DNA from: Pelomyxa schiedti
Lineage: Eukaryota > Protista > Evosea
Direction of reading: 5' to 3'
Assembly: GCA_020536535.1 (NCBI GenBank)
Contig: JAHLWZ010000910.1
Coordinates: forward strand, 1-50,641
Length of the DNA: 50,641 bases
Shown here one piece after another: positions 9,990-46,209 of the stretch (positions within the stretch are counted from its first letter, which is position 1; each line of letters opens with the position of its first letter). Below the pieces are notes generated by a model. That model was given only the letters and a program-made list of their open reading frames with translations. It did not search any database and was not told the DNA's origin. The translations under genes and the position numbers were made by a program.

Positions 9990-10079
9990 GTTGCCTACAG
10001 ATCTTGATAGCGCGATATTGATTTTTTTTTTTGTCTTTTCCAACGGTCTGTTGCGATCCCAAAGGCGCCAAGAAGAGGA
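9990..10079. promoter_or_regulatory. Putative 90-bp bidirectional promoter with a poly(T) tract
   Basis: Lies between divergent ATGs at 9989 (-) and 10080 (+) and contains a T-tract of about 11 nt at ~10022-10032. Confidence 0.55.
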
Positions 10080-18127: not shown

Positions 18128-21100
18128 CTAACTTTCGGTTGGAGACTGGTAGAGCTGGTTTGTTGACATTCCAACCCCTGTCTCGTCGTAAATGGGGTTC
18201 TCTGTGATGCCTGCACTCGTACCATCAAGCAGCGAGTTTGGAATGTACCAATTGGCTCCGTACCGAATGTGCTTTTTTTTTTTTTTTTTTTTGTTAGATC
18301 TTCGGCCTTACCAGTTATAGTTATATTTTATTATTAGTTTACTATCGTTGGTATTGGAATGAGGAATTCACCTTGTACAGGAAAAAGCCAGCAACACCGG
18401 CAGCACAGCAACCAATTACGAGGCCAATAAAGGTGCCTGAAGCTATCAGAGAGTTTTGTTTTATCTCTGCATTGCACTTGCTAGCGTCCGTTGTTGTTCC
18501 GCCACACCGTCCACACACGTCGTTTGTCAGATTGCTATACTGCTTCCCGTCACAGCCGAGACAAGTTGAATTGCCATTGCACACTCCGCAGTAGTCATAC
18601 AAAAGGCCAGATCCAGGTACACCTAAAAAGTGGGGAAAATGAGCCTAATGAGGAAAGGTTCATGTGGAATCGGTTCTCACCATCACATCCCATGCAAGTC
18701 TGGTTATCCCCTCCACATACACCACAAGCATCCCAGTGCTTGCCACTCCACAGGCGCGCGTCGCACCCAATGCAAGTTGTGCCGTCTCCACCACATATTC
18801 CGCAAGTGTCATATAAAAGGAATGACCAAGGTACACCATCACACCCGACACAAAAGTTGGACCCGCCGCAGACATCACACCTAGGGAAATTTAGAGAAAA
18901 CATTGCAAACAACCTCCATACTTGTCGTAAACTGCTCCAGACCATGCAATATAATCACACCCAAAGCACGCGTTGCTCTCTGAAGCATTTGTAACGCAGG
19001 CACCACACATGTCATATTGCAGGTTCCCTGGTTTGCCATCGCACCCAATGCAATCATCTTTCCCTCCACAGACACCGCATTTATCAATCTGCTGCTCAGA
19101 CCACGGAACGTGGTCACAACCCAAGCACGTATTGTTTCCCTCACAGACTCCACAATAGTCATATGTGGATCCAGACCAGGGGATTCCATCACACCCAAGA
19201 CAGTCATTAGTTCCGCCGCAAACGCCGCAACTGTGCAAATCAATAAGGCGGTTTTCACGTTGCGAAATGAGTGGCTTACCTATCTTCCACTGTCCCAGAC
19301 CACGGCACATAGTCGCACCCAAAACAAAGATTCATCATCGATGTATTCGATGTGCATTCCCCGCAGGAATCATATTGCATGTACCCAGGAAGCCCATCAC
19401 AACCAATGCACTCATTAGAGCCACCACAAATTCCACATTTGTCAAGTACCTGTGCTTCCGTTAATGGTATAATGGAAACGTAAAACATACTGCCCCAGAG
19501 AAGGGAACGTAGTCACAACCCAGACAGGTGTCATTGCCTTGGCAGACACCACATGAGTCATATCCGACACCTGACCACGCAACTCCATCACATCCAAGGC
19601 AGTTGTCGTTTCCACCACATATTTCACACCTTGTTTTTTTGTTGGAATTACATATGTGGAACGGGAATACTTGTCAACAACAGCCCCAGACCACGGTACG
19701 TAATCGCAACCACAACATAAATTTTGTTTGGTTGGATCCGATGTACACTCGCCGCAATTGTCATACTGCAAGTTTCCAGGGAGTCCATCACACCCAATGC
19801 ATTCGTTTGATCCACCACATATTCCACACTTATCGACTATCTGAGATAGGTGAGACTTCTACACAAAAAAGAAAAACATCCTCACAGATTTTGACCAGGG
19901 AATATAGTCGCACCCAAGGCAGGTATCATTCCCAAGGCATTCCCCACAACTATCATACTGTGAACCAGACCATGCAACACCATCACATCCAAGACATGCG
20001 TTTGACCCTCCACAAGTCTCGCAACTGTGCAGATACAATGTTATGAAAAATGAGAGTGCAAAATAACAACCTGTCTTCGACCTTTCCTGACCATGGGATA
20101 TAGTCACATCCAAGGCATTGATTGATTTTAGTACTGTCTGAAGTGCATTCGCCACATAAGTCGTAAAGAAGGTTCCCAGGAAGTCCATCACAACCAATGC
20201 ACTCATTGTGGCCTCCACAAATTCCACAGTCATCAAAATCCTGGACAAACACCTTAGACACCATGCAAAGCACCGAAGAGGTAAACTGCATACAGTTTTT
20301 GACCAGGGTATATAGTCGCACCCAAGGCATGTGTCATTCCCCATGCAGACGCCACAGGCATCATATTGCGACCCTGACCAGGGCTCTCCATCACACCCAA
20401 GGCATGCATTTGTTCCGCCGCAAATGTCGCATCTGAAACAAGTAATTATTATTGGGAAAATGGTACTGGGGGCAACTTGTCTGGTACTGCTCCAGACCAA
20501 GGGACATAATCGCATCCAAGACATAGATTCATCATCTCTGGATCCGAAGTACATGCTCCACACATGTCATATTGCAGATAGCCAACATTCCCATCGCACC
20601 CAAGACACTCGTTAGAGCCACCACATATTCCACATTTATCTACAACCTACAAGGACTGAGCAAGAGGTAACTAAGAATAGGCATACGGCATATGACCATG
20701 GCTCATAATCACAACCAAGACATGTGTCATTTCCGGAGCATGCGCCACAGTTATCATACTGTGCGCCTGACCATGGCTCATCGTCACACCCAAGGCAGCC
20801 ATTGGATCCACCGCAGATATCACATCTGTGTAATTTAAATCGCCCAGACAGTATAACACCCACACGGATTACCTGTCTACAGTGGTGCCGGACCAAGCAA
20901 CATAGTCACAACCAAGACAAAGATTTGCCAGAGTAATATTGGAAGTGCATTCCCCACATAAATCATACGGCAAGTTCCCTGGAAGCCCGTCACATCCAAG
21001 GCACTCATTACTACCTCCACAGATTCCACAGTCATCTACCTCCTATTTTTTATCATTATGAAATCCCACCATTTGATGTGGTACCGCATTTGACCATGGC

Positions 21101-24100
21101 ACATAGTCGCAACCCAGACAAGTATCATTCCCTAAACAAACCCCACACGAATCGTATTGAGAGCCTGACCATGGGTCACCATCACATCCAAGGCAAGCAT
21201 TAGTTCCTCCACAGATTTCGCACCTAGGGTAAGATTACATGAAACGAAGTTAAACACTATCCCACTTACTCGTCTGGCACAGAGCCTGACCACGGAACAA
21301 AGTCACAACCCAAACACAGGTTCATTTCGGAAGTATTAGTGGTACATTCACCACACAAGTCGTATTGAAGGTTACCAGGTTTCCCATCACACCCCAGGCA
21401 TTCGTTATTTCCATCACAAATACCACATTCATCAAATTCCTTTTCTACGATTACCAAAAAAAAAAAAAAAAGGTTCCACATACCGTTTTTGACCACGGGA
21501 CATAGTCGCAGCCGAGGCATGTATCATTCCCTAGGCACACGCCACATGAATCATATTGTGAACCTGACCAAGCAACATCGTCACATCCAAAGCAACTATT
21601 TGTTCCTCCGCATATATCACAACTACAAAGAGTTAGTAAGCCATTGCACAAGAGGCGCAAAAACCTATCAACTTCTTTATTTGACCAAGCAACAAAATCA
21701 CATCCAAGGCAGAGATTCATCAATGAAGTGTTGGTTGTACAGATGCCGCAGAGATCATATTGGAGGTTACCTGGTTCTCCATTACATCCTATGCACTCAT
21801 TGGTGCCTCCACATATGCCGCATTTATCTACCGTCTATCTGGCTTCAGAACTAAATTAAGTTGAAGAGATAATCTTACAGTATTTGACCAAGGAACATAA
21901 TCACACCCAAGACATGTCCCATTACCCAGGCATACTCCACAAGGGTCGTACTGCGCGCCTGTCCAGGGGATACCGTCACATCCGAGGCAGGTGTTAGAGC
22001 CTCCACAAATATCACAGCTTTTAGGAATTTTCAGTGGAAGTCAAGGCGATTCAAGGTTTAACTTATCAGGTTTCATCTCTGACCAGGGGACAGCGTCACA
22101 CCCAAAGCAGAGGTTCATCTCATCAGGATCAGAAGTACATTCACCACACATGTCGTACTGCATGTAACCCGGCTTTCCATCACACCCGAGGCAATCATCG
22201 CTACCACCACATATACCACATTGGTCAGGTACCTAAAAGCAGTCAAATCCTCACCACGAAGACCACAGTCAGACCGTTTTAGACCAAGGAACGAAATCAC
22301 ATCCCAAGCACGTGTCGTTTCCAAAGCACACTCCACACGAATCATATTGTTCTCCAGACCAAGCCACATCATCACAACCAAGGCAGCTATCAGAGCCTCC
22401 ACATATATCGCATCTGCAAACAAGTCAGAGAGCGCCATGAAATATTAAAGAAACCGGTCCAATTTCAGCCCGGACCATGGGATCGAGTCACATCCCAAGC
22501 ATAGGTTCATCTTTGTGGTGTTCGATGTGCACTCTCCGCACTGATCGTATTGAAGATTTCCAGGGAGACCATCACACCCAATGCACTCATCCTTGCCTCC
22601 ACAAACATCACATTTGTCCACCTCCTATTGGAATCAGACGGTTGTTACTCTGGTGGAAGCAGCACCGTTTTTGACCAAGGGATATAGTCACACCCCAGGC
22701 AGGTATTATTTCCCAGGCAAATCCCACAAGCATCGTACTGTGCGCCTGACCAGGGAACTCCGTCACACCCAAGACAGCTATCAGTGCCTCCGCAGATATC
22801 ACACCTAAAAGAGTTAAATAACAATTTGTTACAAAGAATCAGACTTGTCAGGTTCTGTGCCAGACCAAGGGACGTAATCGCAACCAAGACACAAGTTAAT
22901 CATGCTACTATTCGAAGTACATTCGCCACATAAATCGTAAGGAAGATTCCCTGGCTCCCCATCGCACCCAATGCATTCATTGTTGCCTGCACATATATCA
23001 CATTTGTCAACAACCTGAGCTAAGTTACAAAAGCAATTCTTTATGTGCATATGCTTGTGCAAACCGCGTTTGACCACGGCACGAAATCACAACCAAGACA
23101 TGTATCATTCCCGGCACAAACGCCACAGTTATCATACTGGGCGCCTGACCATGGCGCATTGTCACACCCAAGGCATTCGTCCGTTCCACCACAAATATCA
23201 CAGCTATATCCCGTTATTTGAGGTTTGTTAGGGTGGAAAAGAACTTGTCAGGCTTCTTGTTTGAAAACGGAACGTCATCACATCCCAGACACGAGTTGAC
23301 ACTATCAGGATCAGATGTGCATTCTCCACACAAGTCATAGGGAAGATTGCCAGGGAGCCCATCACAGCCGATGCAATCATCCGAGCCTCCGCATATTCCA
23401 CACTTATCAACAATCTAGCCCAAAGTGAGCTTTCTAAAAAAAAAGTTACTTACTGTATTTGACCATGCAATGTAGTCACAACCAAGACATGAACTGTTTC
23501 CACCACACACACCACAAGCATCATACTCAGTGCCAGACCATGCGATGTCATTGCAGCCAAGACACTCGTTTGTGCCACCACAAACATCACAGCTGACCAT
23601 ACACGGTTAGAATTCTAGTGATTCTGGATGTTTGTCATACAGGTCATTCTTTTTGTTAGACCATGGGACATGATCACAGCCCAAGCACAAGTTCAGATCC
23701 TCAGTTACATTGGTGCACACTCCACACTGATCATATTGACGGTTTCCTGGGAGTCCATCGCAGCCGATACATTCATCTGCTCCACCACAAACCCCACATT
23801 TATCAATTTCCTGCAAATGAAAGAATTAACTGCCAGTGACAAAGCCAACACAAAGAAAACGCACTGCTTTTGACCAGGGTACGTAATCGCAACCAAGGCA
23901 GGTATTGTTGCCCATGCAAACACCACAGAAGTCATAAGTATTGTAAGACCAAGCCTTACCATCGCAACCAAGGCAGCTATCAGAACCACCACAAACACCG
24001 CATCTGGAGAATCCATTAGTGAAAATGTGAGATACATTTTGGGTACTACTGATCCTCATGCTTATTGGACCAAGCAACATAATCACAGCCCAAGCATAAG

Positions 24101-27100
24101 TTCATGAGGTCTGGGTCTGATGTGCATGCTCCACATTCATCATATGGAAGGTTTCCTGGATTTCCGTCGCAACCGATGCACTCATCGGAGCCGCCACAAA
24201 TGCTGCACTTGTCAACCTCCTGCATCGAATTAGTCTTTCCACCTATCACTCACATGCATACCATATTCGACCAAGGGACATTGTCGCACCCAAGGCAGGT
24301 GTTGTTTCCATCACACTCACCACATTGATCGTAAGATAAACTACTGGGCTTGTCATCACAACCAAAGCATGAATTATGGCCACCACATTCGCCACAGTCA
24401 TCTTCCTCCATTCCGGACCAAGCATGTCCATCACAGCCAACACATAAATCACCTCCAGCGCAAATACCACACTAGGAGATTTAAGTTTGGATTGGAAAGT
24501 TAGTCTGAATATACCTGGTCATACACTTTCCCACTGAAGCACACTCTGTCACAGCCCATTGCTCTGTTGAGTCCTCCACAAATGCCACAGTCATCCACAC
24601 CTTATGAGATATTAAAGGTATGATAGAGGTATTTATGAGCGTCAAGGTACTTGTATTACTCCAGGGTTCCTTGTCGCAACCGAAACAGCCATTGGACCCA
24701 TCACACTCTCCGCACTATTAATGTAAGGATGGCCAAAAAAAATATGCAATACCTCATCATACTCCAAGTAAGAGAACAGAACTCCATCGCATCCAGTGCA
24801 GGAACTGGTTATCAAATAAATAGTAAAAAGAACAGGAGAGGCCGGTACGAATTGTCGCCACCGCAGACTCCACAATCATCAAAGGCAATGGTATCCCATT
24901 GCACACCATTGCATCCAAAGCATTCCCTATTTCCACCACAAACACCACAGGCATCGTAGCGGAATCCACTGTAGACTAGCCCATCACATCCTACACCTAT
25001 GGAACTTAGACCAGAACACGCATTAAATATACTCACAGGCATTATCCCCCATGCAGACACCACAGGCATCCACTTGTGCAGTACTCCATGGGAGACCATC
25101 ACAACCCACGCACGTCATGGCAATAGGATTATTTGTGCAAATTCCACAACTACTAGCATTAGATTCCAAAGGTGATTGGAAGCACCTGCCTGTCATAGAA
25201 CCACCCAGAATTCGGAACATTATCACACCCAACGCAGTCTGGAAACCAATTTAAAAAAAAACTTCCAATTCAGTCTGGGACTACCTGCTTTTCCTTTGCA
25301 AACACCACAAACATCGAGGTCAGCCTTGGACCAAGGCACTCCTGTCAATAGTGCTTATTAGAAAACTACAGTGGAAATTTCGTCTACCATCACAGCCAAC
25401 GCAAGAGGTTCCATCACCACCACATAGGCCGCATTGATCATATTGCTTCCCAGAATAAGCCACACCATCACACCCATGACATTCATTCTAAATACACCCC
25501 GTTAGGGAGCTACATGTTCATTTTGGCAGTATACCGTGCCCTTGCAGACTAGACAGTCATCAAGTTCGGCTTTACTCCAGGCCTTATCATCACAACCTGT
25601 GCAATTATCCATTGCGAGATCTCCAGGCAGTAGGCATTGACCACACAAGTCATATGTATGCGATCCAAATGCCTCTCCATTGCAGTCAAAACAGGAATTT
25701 GTGCCTTGGCACACTCCTATATTCCAGGGACATTTACTTCATGAGTACCGTTTCATTGTATAAAGGCCCTCATACCACATTGATCGTCCTTTGCCTTGGA
25801 CCATAGAATTCCATCGCAGCCTCGACACGATGTCGTGGTTGCCGAACAGCGTCCGCACTCATCATATTGCAGGGGTGGTACAGTGGCGAGACCATCACAC
25901 CCAATGCACCTATGAACAGTTAGTGAGACTTGATCAAGGTAATATAAATGACTTACTTGTTTGTTCCATTGCAGACACCACACAAGTCGTATTCGGCTGT
26001 ACCCCATTTCAGGCCAAAGCAGTCTATACAGCTAGAGCCGTTTCCCCCACAAATTCCACATTGATCATACTACACCTCCGTTAAACCTTACTCGATGGGA
26101 AAAAATTCAATACCCCAGCAGGCGGAACAGTAAACAGGTAATCACATCTAACATCGAGGACATAAGAGTCCAATGAATTGAATTGAAGTGAAGTGAAGAC
26201 AACAAACCCCATGCAAGCATCAGAGCCATCACACACGCCACAGTTGTCCAGGTCCTTATTTCCATAGGGAACCTGCTGACAGTCAAGACCTGAAAAATTC
26301 ATCAGGAAAGAGAAAGGGGGTGGCAGAAGTACAGGCGTTTGATCCATTGCAGACCCCACAGAGATCATACCTATAGGCATAAATGTAAACACTTGATTTT
26401 TGGAGATATCTTACATAAGTTTGGAAGGTGTCCCATCGCAACCAAAGCAGGTGGAGTTATCTCCACCACAAACGTTACATGCATCTACTGTGGCATGACC
26501 GCCCAGCTGGCCAAAACAATCTAAGCAACTTGTGCCATCCCCCCCACATACGCCACATATATCCACCACACTGTGGTGAGGGATTAATTATACATTGGGC
26601 AATGTAGAGGGAAAAAGAACATACGCAATTCCATAGGGGATATTTTTACAGTCAAAGCAAGAGTTAGCATTGGCTAAGGTCACACAGAGCTGACATTGAT
26701 CATAGATCTTCCCAGAGTTGCTCACATGGTCACACCCTAAGAAATAAGTGTCACAGAAAGCATTATCTGGCAGCTGGACAAACCGAAGCAAGGAAATACA
26801 GAATAAACCACTATTGATGCAGCTCCCCATCCAAGAACATTCAGGGTTATAGTACAATTATTTACTGTACTACAAGCAACTGAATACATTTGCAACACGT
26901 GTAAAAGAAATACCTTGCGAGAAGAGAGACATTAAAGGCATATGTATGGAATGGAGACACCCCAGAATATGATGCTGGTGTTACTGATGTAACGTAGGAA
27001 TACTGGTCTGAGGAAACAACCATCTTCAGGATGTTTGTAAGAATAAATACCATTCTCAGAGATTACCTTCAAGTTAGATGTCAGGTACGTCAACCCCGCC

Positions 27101-28536
27101 AAAATGGCAGGAACTACATTGGAGCTATCAGAGGCCAGCTCAAATGATGAGCCAAAACTAGGAGTCAATTAGTCATTCCCGATTTGCTCTTAATAAAGCG
27201 CATACCCAAGTGTGGTTATGAGGCTATTGTACGTTGTCATAACAGTAGGGAAGGTGGATGCGTCGTTGTTAATAACCGCAAATAGAGGCACGACATTCTT
27301 ATTGGTCAGGTGAGTTTTCAACCCAGATGCGGAAGGATAGTCCTCTCCTATGGAAAAGTTAATTTCTGCTTCTAATGTTGTAAGGAACCTGTTCCATAAT
27401 ATCTACAAGAAGTTAGGGAGGTTCCTGCAGAATCAAGAAGAGTTCCAACTGGATAACAAGGAGGCGTGTAACAGTCATCCACACAATCATAGTTATTGAG
27501 CACAGTCGAATATTTATTGTTCCAACATGAAGAAAACTTCATTTCGCGCTCGTAATGGTAATTAATATCAGTTATGGTAACAATCATCTATTAGGAGTGA
27601 GGTACGGTGATGTGACTCGCGACCCAACCTTGAGGGAAGTTGATCTCCAGCCATAGTTAGTGCAAGTTGCCTGTACAATACCAACTAACTGTGATTCAGG
27701 GTCGTCGTAACCCCAGCCAATAACAGTTTCCTAGATATTTTCCATGTAAGCAAACCAACTTCCAGCAAGCACCTTCTGAACATACCGCTACTTTTGCTTG
27801 TAAACTATTATAGTTGCTGGACAAGGTAGAAAGTGGCCAAAATCCATTATCTACAGCATAGGTTCCTGCATCACCAGCAGGATTCAGAGGCTTATCTCCA
27901 AATGTAGAGTATGCAAAGTTCGTCTCTGGCCGAGAGCTTCGCACAGAGGATATAATTCGAGGAATTAGCATGGCCACCATCTGCACATCTGGCGTCATAC
28001 TTCCAGTAATATCCTAAATGGCATGTTTGAAGTACTTCTCACTTAAGGAGAAAAATACTTGACTGAGCCAAAGATCCAACGGCTGAAGTTCTGAGGGAGG
28101 AACATGGACTAAAATGGGCACCACGAGTTTTTGATTCGGCATCAAGAAGACTTCCGTGATAATAGGGTCAATCTTGGCAGTTCAAGTGTGAGGGGAAGAA
28201 AAACAATTTGCTATTGCGTACTACGGAACCAGCAGTTGTCCACACAATCTGACTGTGACTGTGGAACCAGGTCCCGTTAGTGCAAGATCCCACAGAGGGG
28301 CCTGTGGTGTAGTTAGAACCCAGAACGAAACCAAACCCATACGTTTTTTTTTACGATGGGAAATGTGTGCACTTACCAGAAGCAGTTCCTGCCATGCATT
28401 GTGCGGTGCCAGTACACCAACCACATGAAGTACTTTGTACACAAGTTGTGCATATCGTAGACGTGCAAGCAGTGGCTGCGTAACCACAGAAACATAGCAG
28501 TGTGCACAGAAACAGATACGGTACTGTTGGGGACAT
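18128..28536 (-). CDS. Giant integrin-beta-like type I membrane protein (SP-PSI-hybrid-betaI/vWA-hybrid-Cys repeat stalk-TM-NPxY tail), multi-exon
   Basis: Signal peptide MSPTVPYLFLCTLLCFCGYAATA; PSI CTSTICTTCVQSTSCGWCTGTAQC...C...W; IDPIITEVFLMPNQKLVVPILVHV; PLDLWLSQ|DITGSM; FAYSTFGDKPLNP; GYDDPESQLVGIVQATCTNYGWRSTSLK..MIVTITD; EDYPSASGLKTHLTNKNVVPLFAV; ELASDSSNVV. These are colinear with the remembered integrin beta consensus (PVDIYYLMDLSYSM, GFGAFVDKP, DAPEGGFDAIMQATVC...GWR...LLVFTTD, DYPS...L..KNINLIFAV, LSxDSSNV). Tail ...ENPIYDETGVGMSTNQLYQSPTES*; TAG at 18128-18130. Confidence 0.88.
18480..26730 (-). repeat. Protein-level Cys-rich tandem repeat stalk (GCDxxPWSxxxxDxCGVCGGxNxCL), ~75-85 units, with a ~400-bp four-unit higher-order period over ~18900-24430
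   Basis: Directly visible in the minus-strand ORF fragments. The same four-unit succession recurs about 14 times with introns at equivalent positions. Counts are by hand. Confidence 0.9.
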
Positions 28537-29061
28537 ACTTGACGGATTATGGGTGGGGCTCGTTGCTCCCCTCCTTACAATATACAGTATAGCTGGGTAC
28601 AACAGAAAGGAACCCAACAAAGGGTTAGGGTGATGTGTGGTTGCTGTGATTGTTTCTTTTTGGTTATTTTTTTTCACACTGGATGAAACGGAATGGTTTT
28701 CCTGCAAAAGAGGTTCTGCCTGTCAGTTTTCGAGTTTGGAACAGCATCTATAATCAACGCATCTGTTGATCATGCGAAGAATAGACACGGAAACGAACGG
28801 ACCTTCTTTGCAACGACTGTTACATCACAACCAAAACTGCTAACGCCAAAACATAAACATCCTTCAAACCAATCACACACAACTTCTGTACAAAACATAC
28901 ACCACCACCATCATGCCAAGCCGCGGCTCTAGGCCGTATCTACTCCTGAACTCTTTGTTGGTTTCAGGTTTGCCCATTCCTCGTTTCCATTTTTCGTTTC
29001 TTCGTAACCCAATACGGCGCACGAGTGGTGCACAACAATAACGACGGAGAATGATGAATGA
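28537..29061. promoter_or_regulatory. Divergent intergenic region shared by the two giant surface-protein genes
   Basis: 525 bp between ATG 28536 (-) and ATG 29062 (+). It contains T-rich and CA-rich tracts and no convincing ORF. Confidence 0.5.
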
Positions 29062-32000
29062 ATGAATGATGGTGGTGCAGGATGTACAGTGTGGATGCTA
29101 CTCGTTGTTGTGACTACTATGACAATGACGCGGCAATGCGGGGCTACCCTTCCTACGGTTTTTCTTGAGGCTGAATATTACACTACGGCGGGTAGTTGGA
29201 GCAAGGCATCGTCTTCTACCGAATGGGACTCGTGTGGTCAGTATGTCACGACATCCACTAGCACTGGTGGCACTGCTGTGACTTACTCTTTCTCTGTTTC
29301 CTCGTATGTGTTGGACTTATTTTTTTTTTTTTTCTTTTTCTTTCTTTCCTTTCAGTGGCTAACTAACTTGATTAGGGCGGGAACTTATTCTGTGTGGATA
29401 TTATCGAGGATTGCAAATAATCCTGCTGGTGCCTCTTTGTGGCTCAAATTTGACTCTGTGTGTACTTTGCCCTAGCCTGTTCCACTTACATTTCCTAGGG
29501 GTCAAACATAGCTTGGGATCTTGTTGTTTTTGGGAACTCATGGCGCTACGTGGCAGATGTGCCACTTACTTCCGGTTCACATACCTTATCCATCACAATG
29601 AGGTAGATTATTCACCCACTTTTTTTTTTGTTTACTTTACCCTATTAGGAAATACAAAACCAAATTATACATGGATAAAATAATGATTACGGATCCATCT
29701 ACACCAAAGATGGGCTACACAAATAAAGGGAAAGCTGCACAGAACATTCCCACAGGAAAATGTATCTCTTTACTCCCACTAGCACTGTTCTTACAAATTA
29801 CACAAAGGTCAACAGGTCTACTTCGAGGTATGCCTTTTATTGCTGTTAGATCTTACATTAGGCTATAGGCGGAATTTGCATCATCTCCAGGGTCTCCAGT
29901 TTCACTTCTTGCATCTTCTACAGCCTCAATGGAAGGGGCACTGTATAAGGCTGAGTCCAGTACAACATCTTGCAGTACAACTTCTCGCTATGCCAAAGTA
30001 AAGTGATTCTTCCTTCGCCAGCTTATATTTGCACAGTTCAATGTCACTTGGTCAGAGTCAGTTTATCGCCCTGTATGGGTCAGGGTGATTGCCCCCACTT
30101 CTTCATTGAATCAACTCTCCATTTCCGTATGGATCTCTTACCTCAATCAAGAACTCAACATGTTTAGTCCTCCTCTTGTGGGGCTCTTTCTTCATTAACA
30201 GTCTCCAATCCAAGTCAAGAGTTCCAATGGGTCCCAGTACCTCCTTTTTCAATCCTTACTTTTTTTTAATTCATTCTTCCCTAAGTTTCCTGACTTGGTT
30301 ACTGTACCAAATATCTTTTTAATAACCTTTGTTACTGGCTACACATATCTTGACAAAATTTATATTGGATGGGGGGTCCCTACAACCTCTGGAACTCCTG
30401 TAAACATTCCTAGTTCAAGTGCGCATTAATACATTCCCTTGTTTACTTTTGATACTCTTTCAAGGTACTAGTTGTTCAACATATAATGGTCTATGTGATC
30501 CTGTTACTTCCTGTAGTACCGGACCTGTATGCTCCAGTTGTCCAATTGGTTACACTGGATGTGGCAACATCCAATCTTGCAACAAACCCAATGGATGTGT
30601 GCGAACTGTTCCATATGGCTGCTTTTTTGATCGAAGCATTTCCTTATTTGCTTACACCGGAACAACTTCATTCCCAACAAGTTCTATTACTATAGAAATG
30701 TGGGCTTCAAGAGCTGTGTACGTTCCAACTTCAGATATTACCCTTTTGCACTATATTAGTGGTACTTCTGAGTTCCACATCCGTTATAATCCAACTATTG
30801 GATTGTATTTGTATGCGCACTGCTACCTTCCCATTGTATTCTCATTTCCATTCCAGGTACACTTCATTGGTATCTGTCAAGCCGACAACACCCATTCTTC
30901 TTACTCCTGATATCTGGACTCACATTGCTGTTAAGGGTAATTATTATCTTGGTAGGTTCTTATCTTCTTTTAGATTTCATATGATAGAACCACTGCCAAG
31001 TTCTATATAAATGGGGCTTTAGTGGCAACTGTTACAGCCTCTTCTCCTGTTATTACGTCTCCTGGAGTTATTTCTATAGGGAAAAAAGTGGGTAAGTGCA
31101 AATTTCCTTGATTCTTCTTGTACTCATTGTTGTAGTTGATTTCACGAAGGATTTGACACTTCCGGCCTTTGGGGTTGATGAATTGAGAGTGTGGTCAACA
31201 GTTCTAACCCAAGCAACGATTCAGAGCCTCATGGGTGCAACACTGACGACTTCACAGCCCAATCTTCTTCGTACCAAGTTTTTTTCGTTTTCTTTGAGTT
31301 CCTAATGTTTCATGAAGATGTGTGGAGTTTTGGTCCTGACACAGGATCCTGCAGTCCTGTAACAACTGAGACTTTTGGTTTGGTAACAATGACAACATCC
31401 CTGACTGAATGTATGAAAACTTTTTTTTTCAAGCTTACGGTCTCAGGGTATGCCCTCTATCAACTATATTGGGCAACTGGCGGTCCCGATTGGTATTCTC
31501 AGACAAGTTGGCTCACAGGTCAGCCTTGCTCAGGAACAAACCTCTCAAGCCCAGTGTGGTACGGGCTGGATTGTGACAATTCAGGAAGTGGTAGAATTGC
31601 TACCATGTGAGAATAACTGCACATTAGCTCTTTCTCACTTTTACTAGAAATTTGGCCTTTAATAACCTTGTTGGAACGCTACCTTCATCCCTTTTTGCAC
31701 CTTTTTCCAAGCTTTCTATTTTGTAATTAGCACATTACTAATGATCGTCCCTTACACTTCTCAAGAATGGTTGATCACAACACATTAAGTGGTGCGATAC
31801 CAATAGATATAGGTTTCCTTACAAGTGCTGTTACAATGTTTCTTTCTCTCATTGTGAAACTCAACTAACCTTGCCTTGCAGATTGATGCAAAACAATCTT
31901 CTTCAATCTATGCCAACAACAATATCAACTCTAACTTCATTGCAAAAGCTGTGAGTTTGTGCAATTCTAGCTATGCGTTAATATTCATGTAGATATTTGC

Positions 32001-35000
32001 AGAACAACAATCTTACAGGAACAATACCTGATGTATTTAATTCAATGACATCACTGGTTTTCTTGTACATGCAATATAACTCCTTGTCAGGAAATCTTCC
32101 TTCTTCTCTTAGCAGCCTCTCAGCCTTAAAATATCTGTACCTCCCTTGCATAAAGAATCCGTAATTTAATTTCTCAACAGGGATTTGAGTTACAACAAGC
32201 TTTCAGGACTATTTCCTTCCACTATTATTAACAGCCTGATTTCCTATATGTAACACATTGACTGGAATCTTCTTTTGGTTAACATTATTAGGGATGTTTC
32301 TGGCAACTCCTTCTATGGCCAAATGCCAAACCGAGTGACAACAAGCAACTCAAACATGATACTGATGTAAAACAAATTCCTCTTTTCTCCCTTTTCACAA
32401 TCCAAAAAGGAATTTCACAGGCAACAAGTTTATATGTCAAGTGCCACCATTTATGAAATCTTCAACACTTACATTCCCAATTGATGTACATGGCAGTATT
32501 TTCTTTTGCCCTCTGAATAGTTTAGTAAAAACCGTTGAAGGAGCCTCCTGTGGTAAGATTCTTTATCGTTCTGGCTCTGTCCTAACTTGCTGTAGCACCT
32601 GTGACATTACTCTCCATTACACCCAATTCTTTCAACCTCTCCAACAGCTTTTCTGGTCAGACAGCCGTTATAAATGCCACAGGCCTAAATAGCTGTGCCG
32701 GGATACAAGTATATGTTCCTGGTGCTGGATATATTGCTCCTGTTTCCCTAACCGAATCCCTACTCACCTTCGTTATCCCTGCTCATTCATATGGCATTGT
32801 TCCAATACGGCTTATGTGGATTGGTTCCTACAATAATAACTCTGTTGTTTCATCAAATTCCCTCAACTTCAAATACTACTACCCATGCTCCCCACGGTGT
32901 GTGTCTCCATATGGGACTTGTGCTGGTTTGAGTGGTGTATGCATTTGCAATGGCACACATGGCGGTATGTCCAGGCCTTAAAATAAAATTTCAACCTCCA
33001 TTGCAGGCCCTGATTGCAGGTTGTATTCCTGCCCGGCTAATTGCAATGGCCGTGGTATTTGCAACTATACATCTGGTGTTTGCATTTGCAATGCACCATA
33101 TTTTGGGAAGTCTTGCAGTGCAGCCTCCATTTCATGTCCAAATAGCTGTTCCAGGTATTACCCCGTTTTATGCAATTTCAGTCTCATGAAATGCAGTCAC
33201 GGGCAATGTGATCTCTTCACAGGAAAATGTTCATGCTACCTCGGATATTGGGGTGCCAATTGTTCAAGCAAGACCTGCCCACCATACAATTACCCCTACT
33301 GCTCAACACCAAATGGGCAGTGCAATGGGACATCAGGCAAATGTGTATGTGCTCCAGGATGGATTGGAGATTCCTGTTCCATTCCTATCAAGACTTGCCC
33401 TGCTAATTGCACAAGTACAAACTATGGCCAATGCAACCAAGCAACTGGTGCCTCCTTTTTTTTTCACCCATCAAAATAGTCTAACCTCGAAAAGGTGTAT
33501 GCACATGTTTTACATATAAGGGACTTATTCATAGTGGGCCTAATTGCAGTGAAATAATCTGTAGTCCATCTTGCAAAAATGGAGGCGTGTGCAATACTTC
33601 CAGCAGCACCTGTGTTTGTCCAAAAAATTACTATGGCAAGGACTGTTCAACTCCAAGATTTAACTGCCCCGGGAACTGCACTGGCCCTAGTAATGGAGAT
33701 TGTAACACTCTTACTGGGAATTGCTCCTGTCGATCTGGCTTTTCTGTAGTTTCTCCATAGCGTTCCAATCTCAACTCTTGTAGGGTAGCAATTGCTCTTT
33801 GCGTATCTGTCCAGGCACCCCCCAGTGTAACTATCCCAATGGCACATGCGATACCTCCACAGGGCAGTGCTTGTGTAAGAACGACACGACTGCTGGCTAT
33901 TATCATACTGGTTACATGTGTCAGTATCTGAACCACTACTGTCCAGGGAATCCGGAATGCAGTGGTGCACATGGTCACTGCAACCCCCAGACAGGTGTTT
34001 GCATGTGCAATTATCCTTGGGTCCTTAATAACAATTGTTCTGCTGCTAAGTGTCCCAATGATTGTTGGGGGCATGGTACATTGTATGGATTATTTCATTC
34101 ATTTGAACTCGCCATAGGGGACTGTGATATTACACAAGGGAACTGCAAGTGCTGGGCCCAGTATAATACATCTGTTGATTGCCAATTCCTCTACAGTACA
34201 ATTTTTCGACTCTCCTCTCTTTCTCATTCTCATCAGTTGCTTGTCCATCTTCATGTAATCATGGCTACTGTGATACACGCAGTGGTGACTGTATATGCAC
34301 CTCACCTTGGACCAATACTGCCACTGAAAATTGTGCCACAAAATCCTGCCCAGGTGACTGTAACGCTGGGCTTACAGGAACGTGTGTCAATGGCACTTGT
34401 GTATGCAACGCAGGTTTGAGTCAGTCGTTTTGTAGACAGTTTTACATATTCTTGCAGGTTGGACTGGGAGCCAATGCACTGTTGTAAATAAGACTTGTAC
34501 AAGCAATTGCAATACTCCTAATGGCCGGTTAAATCTTTTTTCCCTTTTTCTTTATTAGTAACTAGATCTAGCTGTGACACGACAACTGGAGAATGCTTGT
34601 GTTATGGTTTGTATTATGGAGATAAATGCCAGTCTAGTGTGTCCCGTCCCTGCCGTATCACAACGGTCTCATCATTCAATAGAGTCATGCCTCAATAATT
34701 GTTCTATGCATGGAATTTGCAATACCACCTTGGGTTTGTGCACGTGTGGTAGTGGATGGGAACCACCAGATTGCTATGTAAACCTTTGTTCACTTGAAGA
34801 CTTCTGCACATCAAGCTTTCGGGGTACTTGCAATACCACAGGTGGGAATTGCATATGCAACTACCCATACTATGGAAGCAAGTGTCAGTACAAGATGTGT
34901 CCTTCGAATTGCAGTGGAAATGGCCTGTGCAATAACATTACGTACGTTGAATTTTTTTTTCATCTCTCAACTTAACTTATGATTCACTTAGTGGTGTTTG

Positions 35001-38000
35001 CACATGCCTGAGTGACTGGATAGGAACGGTATTCTATTTCCATCTTTTTTTTTTTTTGCTTTTCATCTTTTCCCCAGACATGCAGTACGTTTTCCGCTAT
35101 GTGCCCACCGACACGGGATAATGGGTGCTATGGGAATGGAGTGTGCAACCACACAAGTGGTTTATGCACTTGCTATACTGGTTACTTTGGTTCTGATTGC
35201 CATCAAAGTATGAACCCACCATATTACCACTTCTGATGAACAACAGAGTTGTGTCCAAATAACTGTTCTTCTCATGGACTGTGCAATTACACCACGGGAA
35301 CTTGCTCTTGTGCGCAGAACTATTCAGATCCAACAGATGTTGCTTGCAGTACCCCTTACTATTCTTGCATGTACTGTTTCATTCTGTGGTTTTTCTCTAT
35401 TTACCTCTATAGTGACAATTTATGTTCGGGAAATGGTTACTGTAACCATCTCGAAGGCAAGTAGAAACCAATTCATTCCAATTCTAAATGACCTCTTGTC
35501 AGGCAATTGTTTCTGCTATTATGGCTTCTATGGAAACGTTTGTCAGTACAAGTACTGCCCTTCTAAATGCGAAGAGCATGGCACATGCAATACGGTATGA
35601 CTTTTGAAACCAAAATATCCTAATTTGCTACTTCAGACAACTGGGATTTGCAAGTGTAACCCTCATTGGTTAGGCGACTCGTGTTTAGAGGCCAACTGTA
35701 TGCCACTGATGTAAACACTACCATTTTTGAATTTTTCCATAGATTCCTGCCCAAAGAATTGTTCTGGGCCACATGGGCATTGTGACAAAACTACAGGCCT
35801 TTGTACCTGTTTTTCTCCATACTCACAGCCAGATTGTTACTATGGTGCGTCTCCCCATCTCCCACTTCACTTTTCACTCATTCTTCTAGCCTCTTGTCTT
35901 CTGAACTGTTCTTTCCCACATGGTGTCTGTGACAAGTTTACCTCATTCCTGAGTCTTTTACATCTCAACCATCTTTTAGCTTGACTGGATCTTGTTCTTG
36001 CAATGAATCTTTTACAGGAAAAGGGTGTCAGGTTGCTAATTTTACTTGTAAGCCAAGCTGCAAGAGTGGAATGTGTAATACAATGTATGCTTCCCCTTGT
36101 TTTTTGCCCTGAAGTCACCTTCAAAACCAGGAATGGCCAGTGCATATGCAACTCAGGCTATTATGGCACCTCGTGTGAATATAAAGAATGTGGTGGCAAA
36201 ACCCCCTGTTCGGGTCATGGTGTCTGTGATAATACAACAGGAATTTGCACTTGCTCCACAAATTTCACAGGGCCTTCCTGTGAAGTACCCAATTGTATAT
36301 TGTTTTACTTTCCATTAATGGAACTAAAAAAAACCTATTGCACAGATCCCTGCCCAAATAACTGCACAGGGTCACATGGACACTGTGACCCAAATCGTGG
36401 ACAATGTGCATGCTTCTCTCCCTGGCTACTCCCTGATTGCCACTATGGTTATTACCTTTGTACTACCTTCCTCCTAAAATTCAGAAAGGCCAATGCCAAC
36501 TGAACTGTTCATATCCTCATGGAAATTGTGATAAGTAGGTCCCCGTATCACAAGCCAGGCTCACCTTTTTAGGTTGACAGCAACATGCTCTTGCAAAACG
36601 TTCTACACTGGGAAAAGTTGTCAAATTGCAAATTTTACATGTTCCCCTACATGCAAAAATGGAACATGCAATACCCAGTATGCCTTTCACACGTAACTTC
36701 TAAGTCTTATCAAAGTGTAGGAATGGGGATTGTGTTTGTTATGGGGGGTATTGGGGGATATCATGCGAGTATAAATCGTGTCCCACAAAGTGCGAACTGC
36801 ATGGCATATGCAACAATGTGTGTTATTTTTTCCCCCTTTTTTTACCTAACATTCCTTGGTTCAGAATACTGGTATTTGTATGTGTTATCAAAACTGGACC
36901 GGCTCAAACTGTCTAGAGGCTGATTGTAAAGTTCCACTTAAAAGCCCTAAACACCAACAATTCTAGATACTTGTCCTAATAACTGTTCTGGCTCCCATGG
37001 CAATTGTGATCAAACCAGTGGTCATTGCGCCTGCTACTCTCCTTGGACACTACCAGATTGCTATTATGGTAGCACTCCATATTGATGCTCTTTATTAACT
37101 CAACATAGCCCAATGCTCTCTCAACTGTTCATATCCACACGGCCAGTGCAATAAGTTTGTAATAGAAACACCACCCACAAGAAATAACTTTTTTTAGACT
37201 CACTGGCGTGTGTGCATGTCAGACAGGATACACAGGAAAAGGGTGCCAGATTGCCAATTTCACTTGCAGTCCTCCATGTGAAAGTGGATCCTGCAACTCA
37301 CAGTACTCTTGAAGCATAGTTCTGTTTTGCTCATGACATTTCAGGGATGGTAAGTGTGTCTGCCTTGCTGGGTACTATGGGAGCTCTTGCCAGTACAAAT
37401 CCTGTCCTTCAAAATGTGAAATACATGGCACTTGTAATAATGTATGCTGGAATTTGGGAACTTTTATATGACAGAATCTAGCTAACTGGTGTTTGTACCT
37501 GTGCGCAAAACTGGACTGGCTCGAGTTGCATGGAGGCTAATTGTAAACTTATTCTGCATTCTGCTGTTTTGTATTGATTTTAGACAGATAAATGCCCGAT
37601 GAATTGCTCAGGCACACATGGCAACTGTGACAAAACAACTGGAAAATGTGCTTGCTACTATCCCTGGAACCTTCCAGACTGTTACTATGGTTATAATCTA
37701 CTTAGGTAAATTCGCGCTAACAATCAATAGCACAATGTTCCCTTAATTGCTCTTATCCACATGGGTCTTGTGACAAGTATCGTGCCTGCTTGTAACTTTT
37801 TGTACCTTAAAAATACCAGGACAACAGGAGTATGTAATTGTCAGAAGTTTTACACAGGCAAGGGTTGTCAGATAGCGAATTTTACTTGTACACCTTCCTG
37901 CCAAAATGGGAGTTGCAATGCACAGTACTCTTCCTATTAATTCACGGAATTTCTTATATTTGCAGAACGGGACATTGTGTGTGCTTTGGTGGGTACTGGG

Positions 38001-41000
38001 GCCCGTCTTGCGAGTACAAATATTGCCCTACAAAATGTGAACAGCATGGCATTTGTAATAATGTGCATAAACTTTGTTTGTTTCTCCTGTTCTCAACAAC
38101 AAAACAATCCTTCAGGTTAGTGGCATCTGTATGTGTAATCAAAACTGGACTGGTGTGAACTGTCTAGAGCCTGATTGTACTTCTTCTTTCGTCTCCTCTG
38201 GGGATTAATTGTAATCATTGCAGATCCCTGTCCCCATAACTGTACAGGCTCCCATGGTCACTGTGATAAAACCACTGGAACATGCGCTTGTTACACACCC
38301 TGGATCCTACCAGATTGCTATTATGGTTGAATAACTTTCTTCTTGCTTGTTTAATGGCGTAATCAGCTAAATGTGCTCTTAACTGCTCATATCCACATGG
38401 CACTTGTTCTATGTAATGCTTCCGGTTTTTTTTTTCTTGGTAAATGGACAAAAGACTGAATGGTACATGCGCATGCCAGAAGTATTACACTGGACAAAGT
38501 TGCCAGATTGCCAATTTCACCTGCACGCCCTCTTGTTTGCATGGCTCATGCAATTCCCAGTAGATTTCCTCCCCCCCCGGGTTTATATTCACTGGCTTTC
38601 AGGAATGGTCAGTGTGTTTGCACTGGAGAATACTATGGACCTGGTTGTGCCTATAAACACTGTCCCTCGAAATGTGAGGTTCATGGTGTCTGTAACAATG
38701 TAAGTATGATGGCACTCTTGACAAATAAATAAAATATCTCTTTTTTTACAAAGATAACTGGAGTTTGTACGTGTGCACAAAATTGGACTGGCTCCAACTG
38801 CTTGGAACCTCATTGTATCTCCCCTTTCTTTACACAACCAATTAAACACCGTTAGATCCTTGCAGCCGAAACTGTTCAGGGTCCCATGGAAACTGTGATT
38901 CGACCATTGGCAAGTGCGCCTGCTATTCCCCATGGACCCTGCCTGACTGTTACTATGGTAACTCCATTATACAATTTCGACTTACTGCTTTTAGCAACAT
39001 GCCCTCTAAACTGCTCTTATCCTCATGGGACCTGTGATAGGTTACAAAAAAACTTCTCCTTTTCATTCTTATTTTTTCCAGTCTTACTGGGAAATGTACC
39101 TGTAAGACATATTATTCTGGTAGTAGTTGCCAGATTGCAAACTTTTCGTGTGTCCCAGCCTGCAAGCATGGCTCCTGCAATTCCTTGTCTGCTAAAGTTC
39201 CTTTAATATTTCTGACATACTTTAGGACTGGAGAGTGTATTTGCTTCGGCGGATTTTATGGTACATTATGTGAATACCAGTACTGCCCTACCAAGTGCGA
39301 ATTACATGGTGTCTGCAATGCGGTAACTCTCTAGTAACGATTCTTTTTTCTATGTTTTGATTATCAACAGACAACTGGCATTTGTGGTTGCAGTCAAAAC
39401 TGGACCGGGGCGTCATGCATGCAAGCTAACTGTATTTCTTATTGTACATTGAAGGGAAAATTCTGAACACAAATAGTTCCGTGTCCAAACAATTGCACTG
39501 GTGGCCATGGTCATTGCAATCACGTAACTGGTACATGCTCCTGCTTTTCTCCTTGGATGGCACCTGATTGCCTTATGGGTATGTTTTTCTTGGTCTAAAT
39601 TATAGATTCTAACCTTAAACTAGCCCAATGCAGTCTTAACTGTTCATATCCAAATGGAGTTTGCAATAAGTTACCAATCAACCAAGTTTTACTTTTTCTC
39701 AGTACACCTAGGACAACTGGAGTATGCCATTGCAAAGCAGAGTACACAGGGAAAACTTGCCAAGTAGCCAACTTTTCTTGTCACCCTTCATGCATCAATG
39801 GAGGCGCATGCAACACACAGTATGTGAGAACTACAAATTCCAAAATTAAATATATTTGTACAGAAATGGTAAATGTGTATGCTATGGTGGTTACTATGGG
39901 AACTCCTGTGAATACAAATCTTGCCCTGCGAAATGTGATGTTCACGGGTTCTGCCACAATGTATGCTCAAATAGGACATTTGGGAAAATCCCTCATACTT
40001 CTCTCAGGATACCGGTTTATGCACCTGCCTACAAAATTGGACAGGAACAAGTTGCATGGAGGCAGATTGTATCGATTACTCTTTCCCGCGCATATCTCAT
40101 ATCTTTTTTCCACCCTCAGATTCCTGCCCAAACAATTGCACTGGGGTACATGGCCACTGTGATCACACGGTTGGAAAATGTGCCTGCTATTCTCCCTGGA
40201 TTCTTCCTGATTGCTATTATGGTTGAAAAGGAATTTTAAATTTAGTGCTCATATCACATAGCTTATTGTCCTTTGAACTGCTCGTATCCCAAGGGTGATT
40301 GTAATGTGTATGTCATAGGCTATCTGTTCTTCACTAACCTCTCCAGTTTGACTGGAATATGCTCTTGCAAAGATCACTACACTGGAAAGAATTGTCAAAC
40401 TGCCAATTTCTCGTGTTCACCAGCTTGTAAAAATGGAGACTGTAACACACAGTTTGATTCATTCCTTTTTGGTTTTTGCTATTCTTACTTGCGTTTTTTT
40501 TAGAAACGGCAAATGTGTTTGTCTTGGGGGGTACTATGGTTCTTCTTGTGAATACAAGTACTGCCCCTCAAAATGTGAACAGCATGGTATTTGTAATAAT
40601 GTAAGCTTTCTTTCTGTTTTTTAAACCCTTTGACTTTGTTTAGAACACTGGAATTTGTGTGTGCAATGGAAATTGGACTGGGAACTCTTGCATGGAAGCA
40701 AATTGTATGAGTTTTTTCCTTTATTGTTTCTTACAAGTTATACTAGATGAGTGCCCCAAGAACTGTTCAGGGAGCCATGGACATTGTGATGCCACGACCG
40801 GTGTTTGTTCTTGCTTCTCCCCCTGGACCCCCACTGATTGCAGCCTTGGTAATTAGATTAATGTAATGCGCCTAGGACTAACATCGATTTAGCAACATGC
40901 GCACTGAATTGCTCTTATCCTCATGGTGTTTGTGATAAGTGTGTAATAGCAACTTTTACTCTTCCGTTCAATTTCCATAGGTTGAGTGGGCTGTGCAATT

Positions 41001-43127
41001 GCGTCGCCGGATATACTGGGAAAGGTTGTCAAATTGCTAATTTCACGTGCTCTCCTCCTTGTAAGAATGGCAACTGTAACTCCCAGTGTGTCACCCTATT
41101 CGTTCCTCAACCACTAATCCAAGAAGAACAGGGAAATGTGCTTGCACTGGGGGATATTATGGGACCGCCTGTGAATATAAACTGTGCCCAACCAAATGCG
41201 AAGAGCATGGTTCATGCAACAATGTACAGATCCTTCCCCCCCTGCAAAGTTCTCTGGATAAACTTTTATAGATAACTGGAATTTGTTCTTGCATGTATAA
41301 TTGGACTGGATCCAGCTGCAGTGAGCCCGACTGTATGTGCTTTGCTGCTAGAACCTGTTTTTCCCCTCATTATCCCATGGCGCAGATTCCTGCCTGAATA
41401 ACTGCACCGGATCTCATGGCCACTGTGACCGCACCGTTGGTAAATGTGTGTGCTACTCTCCATGGCTGACACCAGATTGCTATTATGGTTGCTTTTTTGG
41501 TTTTATTTGTTTCATTAACCTTTTTAGCTCAATGTCCGTTGAATTGTTCTTACCCAAAGGGAATATGTGACACGTAAGTATTTGGGTTTTTTTATGTGTA
41601 AGATTGCATTAGTCTTACGGGACTCTGTCACTGTAAATCCCCCTATACGGGTAAAAACTGTCAGACAGCAAATTTCACCTGTTCTCCGCCTTGCCAAAAT
41701 GGAAATTGCAATTCTCAGTAAGAGCTAATTCAACCTCACAACACTAACATTGATGTAGAACTGGCCAGTGTGTCTGTGTTGGCGGGTTTTATGGTACATC
41801 GTGTGAGTACAAGTACTGCCCTTCGAAATGTGAACAACACGGCACGTGCAATACAGTATAACACTGCAAATGAAATTTCTTGCAGAATAACCATATTAAG
41901 ACAACCGGCCTTTGCAGCTGTTCCCAAAACTGGACAGGCACTTCTTGCATGGAAGCCAACTGTAATTTCCTGTGTATTTCCTCAAAATCTCACCATTTTT
42001 GAAAAAGATCAATGCCCAAATAATTGTTCGGGGCTGCATGGGCATTGTGATACCACCACCGGTTTATGTGCTTGTTTCACTCCGTGGGTTCTTCCAGATT
42101 GTTTACTTGGTATTCACCCCGGAAAATTGTTTTATCCTTAATTCTTTTCAGCTACCTGCTCCCTCAACTGTTCGTACCCGCACGGCGTTTGCAACATGTT
42201 TGCACCTCCACCTCATTTGCCTTTTCCGCTAACTCGTTTCAGAATGACAGGGCTGTGCAATTGTAGTTTTGGTTATACTGGAAAGAGTTGTCAGATAGCA
42301 AATTTCTCATGCTCTCCGCCTTGTCAGAATGGGAGCTGCAACTCTCAGTCAGATTTCCTTTTTTTTTTTTTTTTTTTTGTAAGAGTTCTTACATCTCTAG
42401 GACTGGTCTGTGTGCTTGTAATGGTGGCTATTATGGAAATGCCTGTGAATACAAGAAATGTCCCTCCAAGTGTGAGATCAATGGAATTTGCAACAATGTA
42501 TACTCTTTTATAAACTTTAGTTTTTCACACCACCAAAGCAAACTGGAGTGTGCACTTGTTCACAGAACTGGACAGGCACCAATTGCATGGAATCTTTCTG
42601 TAGAAACAACTTCCTCCAACACAAGTAATCGCCATTATAGATTCTTGCCCAAATAATTGCAGTGGCGCCAATGGACACTGTGATCACACCACTGGTAAAT
42701 GTGTGTGCTATTCCCCGTGGGTTCTCCCTGATTGCTATTTTGGTACAATTTTTTCCCCTTTCTTTTTCAATAAACTTCATTCAAGCGCAATGCCCTCTGA
42801 ATTGCTCCTATCCCAACGGCGATTGCGATCGGTATGTGTACAGCTCCATCAATCCTACTGATATTCCTCAGCTTAACTGGAGCTTGTCACTGCCGGGCCC
42901 ACTTTTCGGGGCAGAATTGCCAGATCTCCAACTTCACTTGTTCACCCCCTTGCCAGAATGGGCAGTGCAATTCACAGTAAGTGCTACTTATTGCCAGGAG
43001 CCATAACAACAAATAAAGGAATGGAAAGTGTGTTTGCCCTGGAGGATATTACGGAACGGCGTGCGAATATCGAAATTGCCCATCAAAATGTGAGCAGCAT
43101 GGCATATGCAACACAGTATGTGTTTCT

Positions 43128-43162
<35 letters not shown>

Positions 43163-45979: not shown

Positions 45980-46209
45980 ATAACTGGAGTTAACCACGCC
46001 CACCCACAACCCTGTAATCTACATGTATTAAGATTTCAAAAACATGTTCCCCTCACATCAAACGAAGGTAACTTGCCCTAGAAAGTAATAGTTCGTTTCC
46101 TCCGATCGGTCTGAACATTTTTAGACCCATTTTCCAAGAAAGTCAGTTTCTTGGCCCAACCAGACCCTTTTCGTGCCTGTTGCCCTCTAGTAAAGCACAA
46201 CAACAACAA

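Follow-up and report, generated by a model that had tools for sequence, protein, structure and literature searches.

A head-to-head integrin-beta and lectin/LamG/LRR/IPT/EGF gene pair of Pelomyxa schiedti, duplicated as a unit and with equal stalk module numbers

Two very large, intron-dense genes of Pelomyxa schiedti, transcribed divergently from 5' ends at positions 28240-29700 of contig JAHLWZ010000910.1, were analysed within a window of 50,641 nucleotides (positions 1 to 50,641 of the forward strand). One gene encodes an integrin-beta chain; the other (the partner gene) encodes a single-pass surface protein in which a lectin-like, LamG, LRR and IPT head is carried on an array of EGF modules. 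Paralogues of the two genes occur together elsewhere in the genome, and the numbers of modules in their stalks, which are unrelated in sequence, are equal within the pairs; this equality is the main new result. Coordinates given without a contig refer to JAHLWZ010000910.1, which is called C910 where it has to be told from the contigs of the paralogues (C351, C906, C693 and C394).

The locus and its integrin-beta gene

A preliminary description of the window had placed an integrin-beta gene and an EGF-array gene head-to-head with 525 bp between them. The layout is real, 525 bp separating the ATG at 28536 (minus strand) from the ATG at 29062 (plus strand), and the gene sizes given there (~10 kb and ~17 kb) hold, the spans being 10.4 kb for the beta gene and about 17 kb for the partner gene. 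Introns at the locus are 36-72 nt long, with weak GT...AG signals. The integrin-beta gene was delimited as follows.

18128..28536, minus strand: integrin-beta gene, about 55 exons and about 2,600 amino acids, from a splice-aware model and exon matches to Pfam PF00362
28377..28536, minus strand: beta exon 1 with start codon, signal peptide and PSI-type Cys motif, from sequence reading and the model; kept in four paralogues
27786..28013, minus strand: exon of the metal ion-dependent adhesion site (MIDAS; DITGS), a stop-free frame; paralogues 71-75% and 43% identical
18399..26740, minus strand: beta stalk, 80-82 modules of about 26 amino acids (CxGCD...DxCGxCxG), including 13 two-exon cassettes of four modules
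18376..18446 (approximate), minus strand: beta membrane helix with GxxxGxxxG and an AGFFLYK border
18128..18271, minus strand: beta tail exon (GANWYIP, NPIY, NQLY, stop), of which there are five copies in the genome

The protein is ordered as a signal peptide, PSI, a betaI head, the stalk of four-Cys modules, a membrane helix and a tail with NPIY and NQLY, after which the stop codon follows at 18128-18130. The features by which an integrin beta is recognised were thus found together: signal peptide with PSI, betaI with MIDAS, a single membrane helix and a cytoplasmic NPxY. The PSI was assigned from its Cys motif and without a separate Pfam PSI search. Queries in the database, family and structure searches reported here were single exons or the public Pelomyxa proteins P0001 and P0002, of which P0001 is the public model of the C693 partner; the joined splice models served for module counts and for local tblastn and FastTree comparisons with the paralogous loci. 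One exon of the present beta gene matched PF00362 with an E value of 5.5e-4, under the cut-off, the domain being split by introns; the C693 beta paralogue matched it above the cut-off, at 43.6 bits. A further PF00362 match, on contig C146 (E 0.15), was unsupported by tblastn and was dropped.

The stalk is not composed of four I-EGF domains and a beta-tail domain, and its exons matched no Pfam EGF family. An AlphaFold2 prediction of four stalk modules was unusable (mean predicted local distance difference test score of 43). A 178-amino-acid stop-free beta frame, used as a homologue query, had no match.

The partner gene

The partner gene and its parts are listed below; its start is treated together with the spacer.

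29062..45979, plus strand: partner gene as delimited in the preliminary description, more than 100 exons and about 4,000 amino acids, with the stop codon at 45977-45979
30552..32523, plus strand: stretch covered by a spliced RNA contig of 1.5 kb (run SRR23919876)
32900..45142, plus strand: EGF array of 80-81 EGFs, including 14 five-exon cassettes of four EGFs, with matches to Pfam EGF_TEN, EGF_2 and EGF_Teneurin
45143..45220, plus strand: membrane helix (NWWIIVVCAG...VGG..AGF), after which conserved RQFRI and Y-I-D-M-E motifs follow
45300..45976, plus strand: Gly/Ser-rich low-complexity tail extension of about 250 residues, in the present-locus copy only

From the N-terminus the protein carries two CBM6/35-like modules, a Cys-rich segment, LamG (ConA-like), plant-type LRRs, IPT, about 80 teneurin-type EGFs, a membrane helix and a tail. 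The two N-terminal modules begin with a FLEAEY-type motif and resemble CBM6, CBM35 and GH115_C, with scores of 0.90-0.92 in a protein-language-model atlas that are to be taken as a lead only. LamG was identified by Pfam as Laminin_G_3 (ConA-like), the best Protein Data Bank sequence matches of the LRRs were GSO1, FLS2 and SERK, and the match to IPT/TIG was weak. When a profile of the LamG exon was run against 1.84 billion representative proteins, full-length matches were limited to KAH3759354.1 ('tenascin-X precursor') and KAH3763777.1, both from Pelomyxa schiedti; the other matches covered a short Cys-rich motif only. Residues 1-600 of the P0001 head, used as a homologue query, retrieved only the query itself, and the results for residues 1-900 were swamped by LRR proteins.

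The partner gene is transcribed and spliced, because the RNA contig is 100% identical to the genome over 12 exon blocks from which 11 introns of 36-46 nt have been removed. One predicted intron (about 31271-31317) is still present in the RNA contig, where it disrupts the frame; an in-frame intron of 36 nt (about 31411-31447), which the gene model had missed, has been removed. A predicted intron at 45218-45274 is spurious. The tail extension, rich in Gly, Ser, Asn and Lys, has a G+C content of 0.53, and a similar G+C-rich low-complexity block lies at 9000-11000.

The spacer and the start of the partner gene

Two features were delimited between the coding regions.

28537..28912, no strand: shared upstream spacer of 376 bp, or of 525 bp with the partner start at 29062
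28913..28967, plus strand: candidate first exon of the partner, proposed from three paralogues and P0001; its ATG follows an A/C-rich leader directly

The partner may start at 28913, which would reduce the spacer to 376 bp. This start is proposed because three paralogues, in which the lectin exon is without an in-frame ATG, have their start codon in a very short exon further upstream, just past an A/C-rich leader, and because P0001 likewise has a tiny upstream first exon. The candidate intron that would follow (28968-29080) preserves the frame; the length of the signal region favours the start at 29062. In the same region a 20-nt inverted repeat, 85% complementary (28895-28914 and 29066-29085), spans both candidate starts and may be due to chance.

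At all four loci where the genes lie head-to-head, a T/G-rich tract stands beside the beta start and an A/C-rich tract beside the partner start. The spacer matched no Rfam family and held repeats at chance level only. Co-regulation of the two genes is a reasonable inference from the layout, with a putative shared promoter.

Five pairs in the genome

The whole assembly was searched exon by exon. Head exons of the beta gene were found on C910, C906, C351 and C693 and those of the partner gene on the same four contigs, and the C-terminal exons of both genes on these four and on C394. Both families therefore have five members, which are paired one to one, and the assembly holds no unpaired member of either. 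In local comparisons both proteins were colinear over their entire heads at each locus. Four pairs stand head-to-head, with ATG-to-ATG spacers of 376 (or 525), 312, 468 and 444 bp. In the fifth and most divergent pair (C394, 4500-22200) the two genes lie on one strand and are separated by about 3.5 kb, in which a Tesmin/TSO1-type CXC gene is found; the beta-like gene of this pair is without NPxY and reads DQSYF at the MIDAS position, and the partner-like gene is complete. A short contig, C2406 (1,587 bp), aligns to part of the C906 partner (C906 17618-19212) at 95.6% identity; rather than a sixth locus, it is probably an allele that has diverged or a copy made recently.

Conserved linkage had been named in the preliminary description as a test of the pairing, by synteny and by paralogous pairs elsewhere; it is borne out, all five beta genes lying beside a gene of the partner family and four of them head-to-head with it. 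The trees of the two heads have the same topology, ((C910,C351),C906,(C693,C394)), with local supports of 0.83-0.99 (FastTree); the alignments were anchored on the C910 sequence, and the C910 branch is for that reason artificially short. Divergence runs in parallel, the beta heads being 61, 58, 47 and 36% identical to the C910 copy and the partner heads 64, 56, 42 and 38%. In the flanks of the four head-to-head loci (4.6-18 kb on each side) no paralogy was detected by tblastx with E below 1e-6. Because both trees share their topology and the flanks are unrelated, the pair is the unit that was copied, or else the only part retained.

The only paralogy seen in flanking DNA involves a 663-amino-acid intron-less open reading frame by the 3' end of the C351 beta gene (C351 15605-17596, minus strand); four relatives of it stand in tandem immediately upstream of the beta-like gene of C394 (C394 22700-29900).

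Stalk module numbers

Modules were counted from the end of the head to the membrane helix in the splice-aware models, with two independent signatures for each gene (the number of CxxC motifs divided by two and of Cys residues divided by four in the beta stalk; the number of CxC motifs and of Cys residues divided by six in the partner stalk). The counts were as follows.

C910: beta CxxC/2 80, Cys/4 81.8; partner CxC 80, Cys/6 81.3
C351: beta CxxC/2 36.5, Cys/4 38; partner CxC 36, Cys/6 36.5
C906: beta CxxC/2 32.5, Cys/4 33.5; partner CxC 31, Cys/6 31.5
C693: beta CxxC/2 28, Cys/4 29.5; partner CxC 28, Cys/6 28.3
C394: beta CxxC/2 29, Cys/4 31; partner CxC 30, Cys/6 30.2

These values were nearly unchanged for intron penalties from -6 to -12, and the public model of the C693 partner, P0001, has exactly 28 EGFs. 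A crude six-frame count of Cys overcounts by about 17% and was used as a cross-check only. The observed pairing gives the smallest summed mismatch among the 120 possible pairings, and also among the 24 pairings of the four short pairs. The earlier estimate of about 80 Cys-rich repeats in four-repeat cassettes in each gene of the present locus agrees with the counts, which give 80-82 four-Cys modules for the beta gene and 80-81 EGFs for the partner.

Relative to its sister C351, the C910 pair has gained about 44 modules in each gene, and C351 exceeds the shorter pairs by about 7 in each. The C910 expansion consists in the beta gene of 13 cassettes, each with exons of 170 and 139 nt that encode four modules, and in the partner gene of 14 cassettes with exons of 102, 46, 105, 97 and 61 nt that encode four EGFs. 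The cassettes are about 63% (beta) and 59% (partner) identical in DNA (range 59-65%), with strictly conserved exon lengths. The expansions are old and maintained, because the identity of the cassette DNA is low while the exon lengths have been strictly kept. The match cannot be due to a single recombination mechanism, because the arrays, one on each side of the spacer, have no sequence relationship.

Membrane helices and tails

The small-residue membrane motifs pointed out in the preliminary description are present and are conserved in the paralogues of both genes. Gly and Ala abound in the helices of both proteins, and these helices, together with the residues near them, are conserved to a far greater degree than the heads, whose identity between C910 and C693 is 42-47%. 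The consensus of the beta helix is G-x3-G-x3-G ... AGFF-x-YK, and that of the partner helix is NWWIIVVCAGGG ... VGG-x3-GF, followed by [VI]RQFRI and Y-x-D-M-[DE]. The partner tails of three paralogues are about 30 residues long. Conservation of this kind would be expected from helix-helix packing, and is equally compatible with association of the partner with the beta chain and with self-association of each.

Readings of the pair

The reading we favour, at about even probability, is that the two proteins form a functionally coupled two-chain surface receptor and act side by side in one membrane. Each Pelomyxa integrin-beta gene has its own co-duplicated partner gene for a single-pass lectin/LamG/LRR/IPT/EGF protein, and in four of the five pairs a divergent upstream region of 0.3-0.5 kb is common to both genes. 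The two proteins would be made together and would occupy one membrane as neighbours, holding their heads at equal height, with the partner contributing the recognition of carbohydrate or protein and the beta chain a metal-dependent site and, through NPxY, the link to the cytoskeleton. The partner family offers what would be needed of a second chain in the same membrane, namely a leg matched to that of the beta chain, a short tail and a conserved helix. We further propose, tentatively and with distinctly less confidence, that the co-duplicated chain replaces a propeller-type alpha chain, as an alternative two-chain integrin whose legs, of 28 to 80 modules and possibly of at least 100 nm, are in register, and that this partnership may go back to a common ancestor with Mastigamoeba.

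The idea of a surrogate partner for the beta subunit was one of three readings offered in the preliminary description, and it fits the matched stalks best of the three; the partner is nevertheless without any defining feature of an integrin alpha. FG-GAP was not found by Pfam in the C910 partner exons or in P0001 and P0002, where Laminin_G_3, LRR and EGF families were found instead. PF08441 (thigh/calf) had no match anywhere in the genome in a search that must be regarded as weak, control genomes having been equally silent; the partner leg is an EGF array. GFFKR is absent from the inner membrane border of the partner, which in four paralogues reads GF-x-A-[VI]-RQFRI, alike in character and not in sequence.

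Several points weigh against a coupled receptor, and some of them argue for a rather unlikely but serious alternative, in which the genes are neighbours by descent only: a duplicated two-gene segment was never broken up, the proteins act independently, and equal stalks arose by chance or from a common need for height, for example through a surface coat. Co-duplication accounts for adjacency without function, and since each duplication copied a whole pair, the stalk correlation is in part inherited as well; the five data points share a common ancestry, and the argument from equal stalks rests effectively on two or three independent changes, mainly the C910 expansion. Equal numbers of modules also need not give equal lengths. 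The C394 pair is no longer head-to-head. The four head-to-head spacers are not conserved: they cannot be aligned, and no common motif of 8-10 nt was found in at least three of them beyond simple-sequence words. An A/C-rich leader and short intergenic distances are generic in this genome, because the next gene downstream, for a receptor-type phosphodiesterase, also has a short A/C-rich leader and begins only 231 bp past the partner stop (45977-46213), and intergenic regions are short throughout. Finally, FG-GAP/VCBS-type repeats with DxDGDG-like calcium motifs were found on C853 (7800-12200) and C1269 (6500-7400); these genes are unlinked to any beta gene and are candidate integrin-alpha-like propellers, which could be conventional beta partners. 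Descent alone, however, does not readily explain why, after duplications that date far back (heads down to 36-47% identical) and complete replacement of the flanks, no pair has been split and no unpaired member is found. Nor does it explain why two unrelated arrays on opposite sides of the spacer each gained about 44 modules in C910 and about 7 in C351, or why the membrane helices are unusually conserved in both proteins.

An arrangement between cells, in which the beta chain of one cell binds the lectin/EGF protein of another as a heterophilic receptor and ligand, or in which the locus serves self-recognition like tgrB1/tgrC1 of Dictyostelium, is considered improbable. It gives no reason for equal stalk module numbers, and Pelomyxa is not known to have a multicellular stage. 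In its favour, the classic ligands of animal integrins include LamG and EGF domains (10.1101/2020.04.29.069435). The self-recognition proposed earlier finds no support in the comparison of C2406 with the C906 partner, which covers 1.6 kb of the LamG-LRR part: 2.9% of exon bases and 5.4% of intron bases differ, with 17 synonymous and 7 non-synonymous changes in 291 codons. The introns being more diverged than the exons, the pattern in this one diverged copy is that of purifying selection and does not suggest hypervariability.

Chance adjacency in a compact genome had been the caveat of the preliminary description itself. The 52-Mb genome does carry about 20,000 genes (149,016 introns in all, with 7.43 in each gene; PMC8887013), and adjacent genes are often transcribed divergently. 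Among about 20,000 genes, however, a given beta gene would directly adjoin one of the five partner genes with a probability of about 5 in 10,000, against which the partner is the immediate neighbour four times in the same orientation and lies within 3.5 kb the fifth time. Chance is thus hardly credible as an explanation of the locus, and as the origin of the adjacency it is excluded, because all five beta genes are paired, the two trees agree in topology and the stalks of each pair match in module number.

Known systems and significance

Among known receptors the animal integrins come nearest. The Pelomyxa beta chain is a true relative of theirs (PSI, betaI with MIDAS, Cys-rich stalk, small-residue helix, NPxY tail) and differs in its leg, which is made of 26-amino-acid four-Cys modules instead of four I-EGFs. 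The partner resembles an integrin alpha in being single-pass, in its short tail (about 30 amino acids in three of the four head-to-head copies) and in the Gly-Phe and basic border at the inner face of the membrane, and its leg matches the beta leg in module number. It differs in having no FG-GAP propeller, thigh/calf or GFFKR; its head consists of two CBM6/35-like modules, LamG, LRR and IPT, and its leg of 28-80 EGFs. The alpha and beta genes of animal integrins are not known to be arranged head-to-head.

In layout only, the pair is like tgrB1/tgrC1 of Dictyostelium, diverging genes for single-pass surface proteins which share a promoter and have likewise been duplicated in pairs in their genome (10.1101/2025.08.01.668227). 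TgrB1 and TgrC1, which bind between cells, are extremely polymorphic paralogues of the IPT/TIG kind, whereas the two Pelomyxa proteins are mutually unrelated. A further parallel may be that of Mastigamoeba balamuthi, where 'tenascin' and PA14 open reading frames lie adjacent on integrin-beta contigs, as reported only as a check for contamination (10.1101/2020.04.29.069435); there too, an archamoebal integrin beta stands beside an EGF-array ('tenascin') and a carbohydrate-binding-type open reading frame. At the level of domains only, the partner is like teneurin and tenascin in its EGFs (Pfam EGF_TEN, 357 bits in P0001, with EGF_Teneurin and EGF_2) and like the ectodomains of plant LRR receptors in its LRRs, which are nearest to GSO1, FLS2 and SERK; it is without the YD-shell, FN3, fibrinogen and kinase domains of these proteins.

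Integrin betas are found in numerous amoebae, among them some without a recognisable alpha chain (10.1101/2020.04.29.069435). As to how the beta chain works in amoebae, the co-duplicated, stalk-matched partner is a concrete and testable candidate, for which the genome of Pelomyxa schiedti offers five natural cognate pairs of differing length. If the two chains are coupled as proposed, two unrelated repeat arrays would have evolved in step, which is unusual; if regulation is all that couples the genes, the pair would still be a clear two-gene adhesion cassette that duplicates as a unit.

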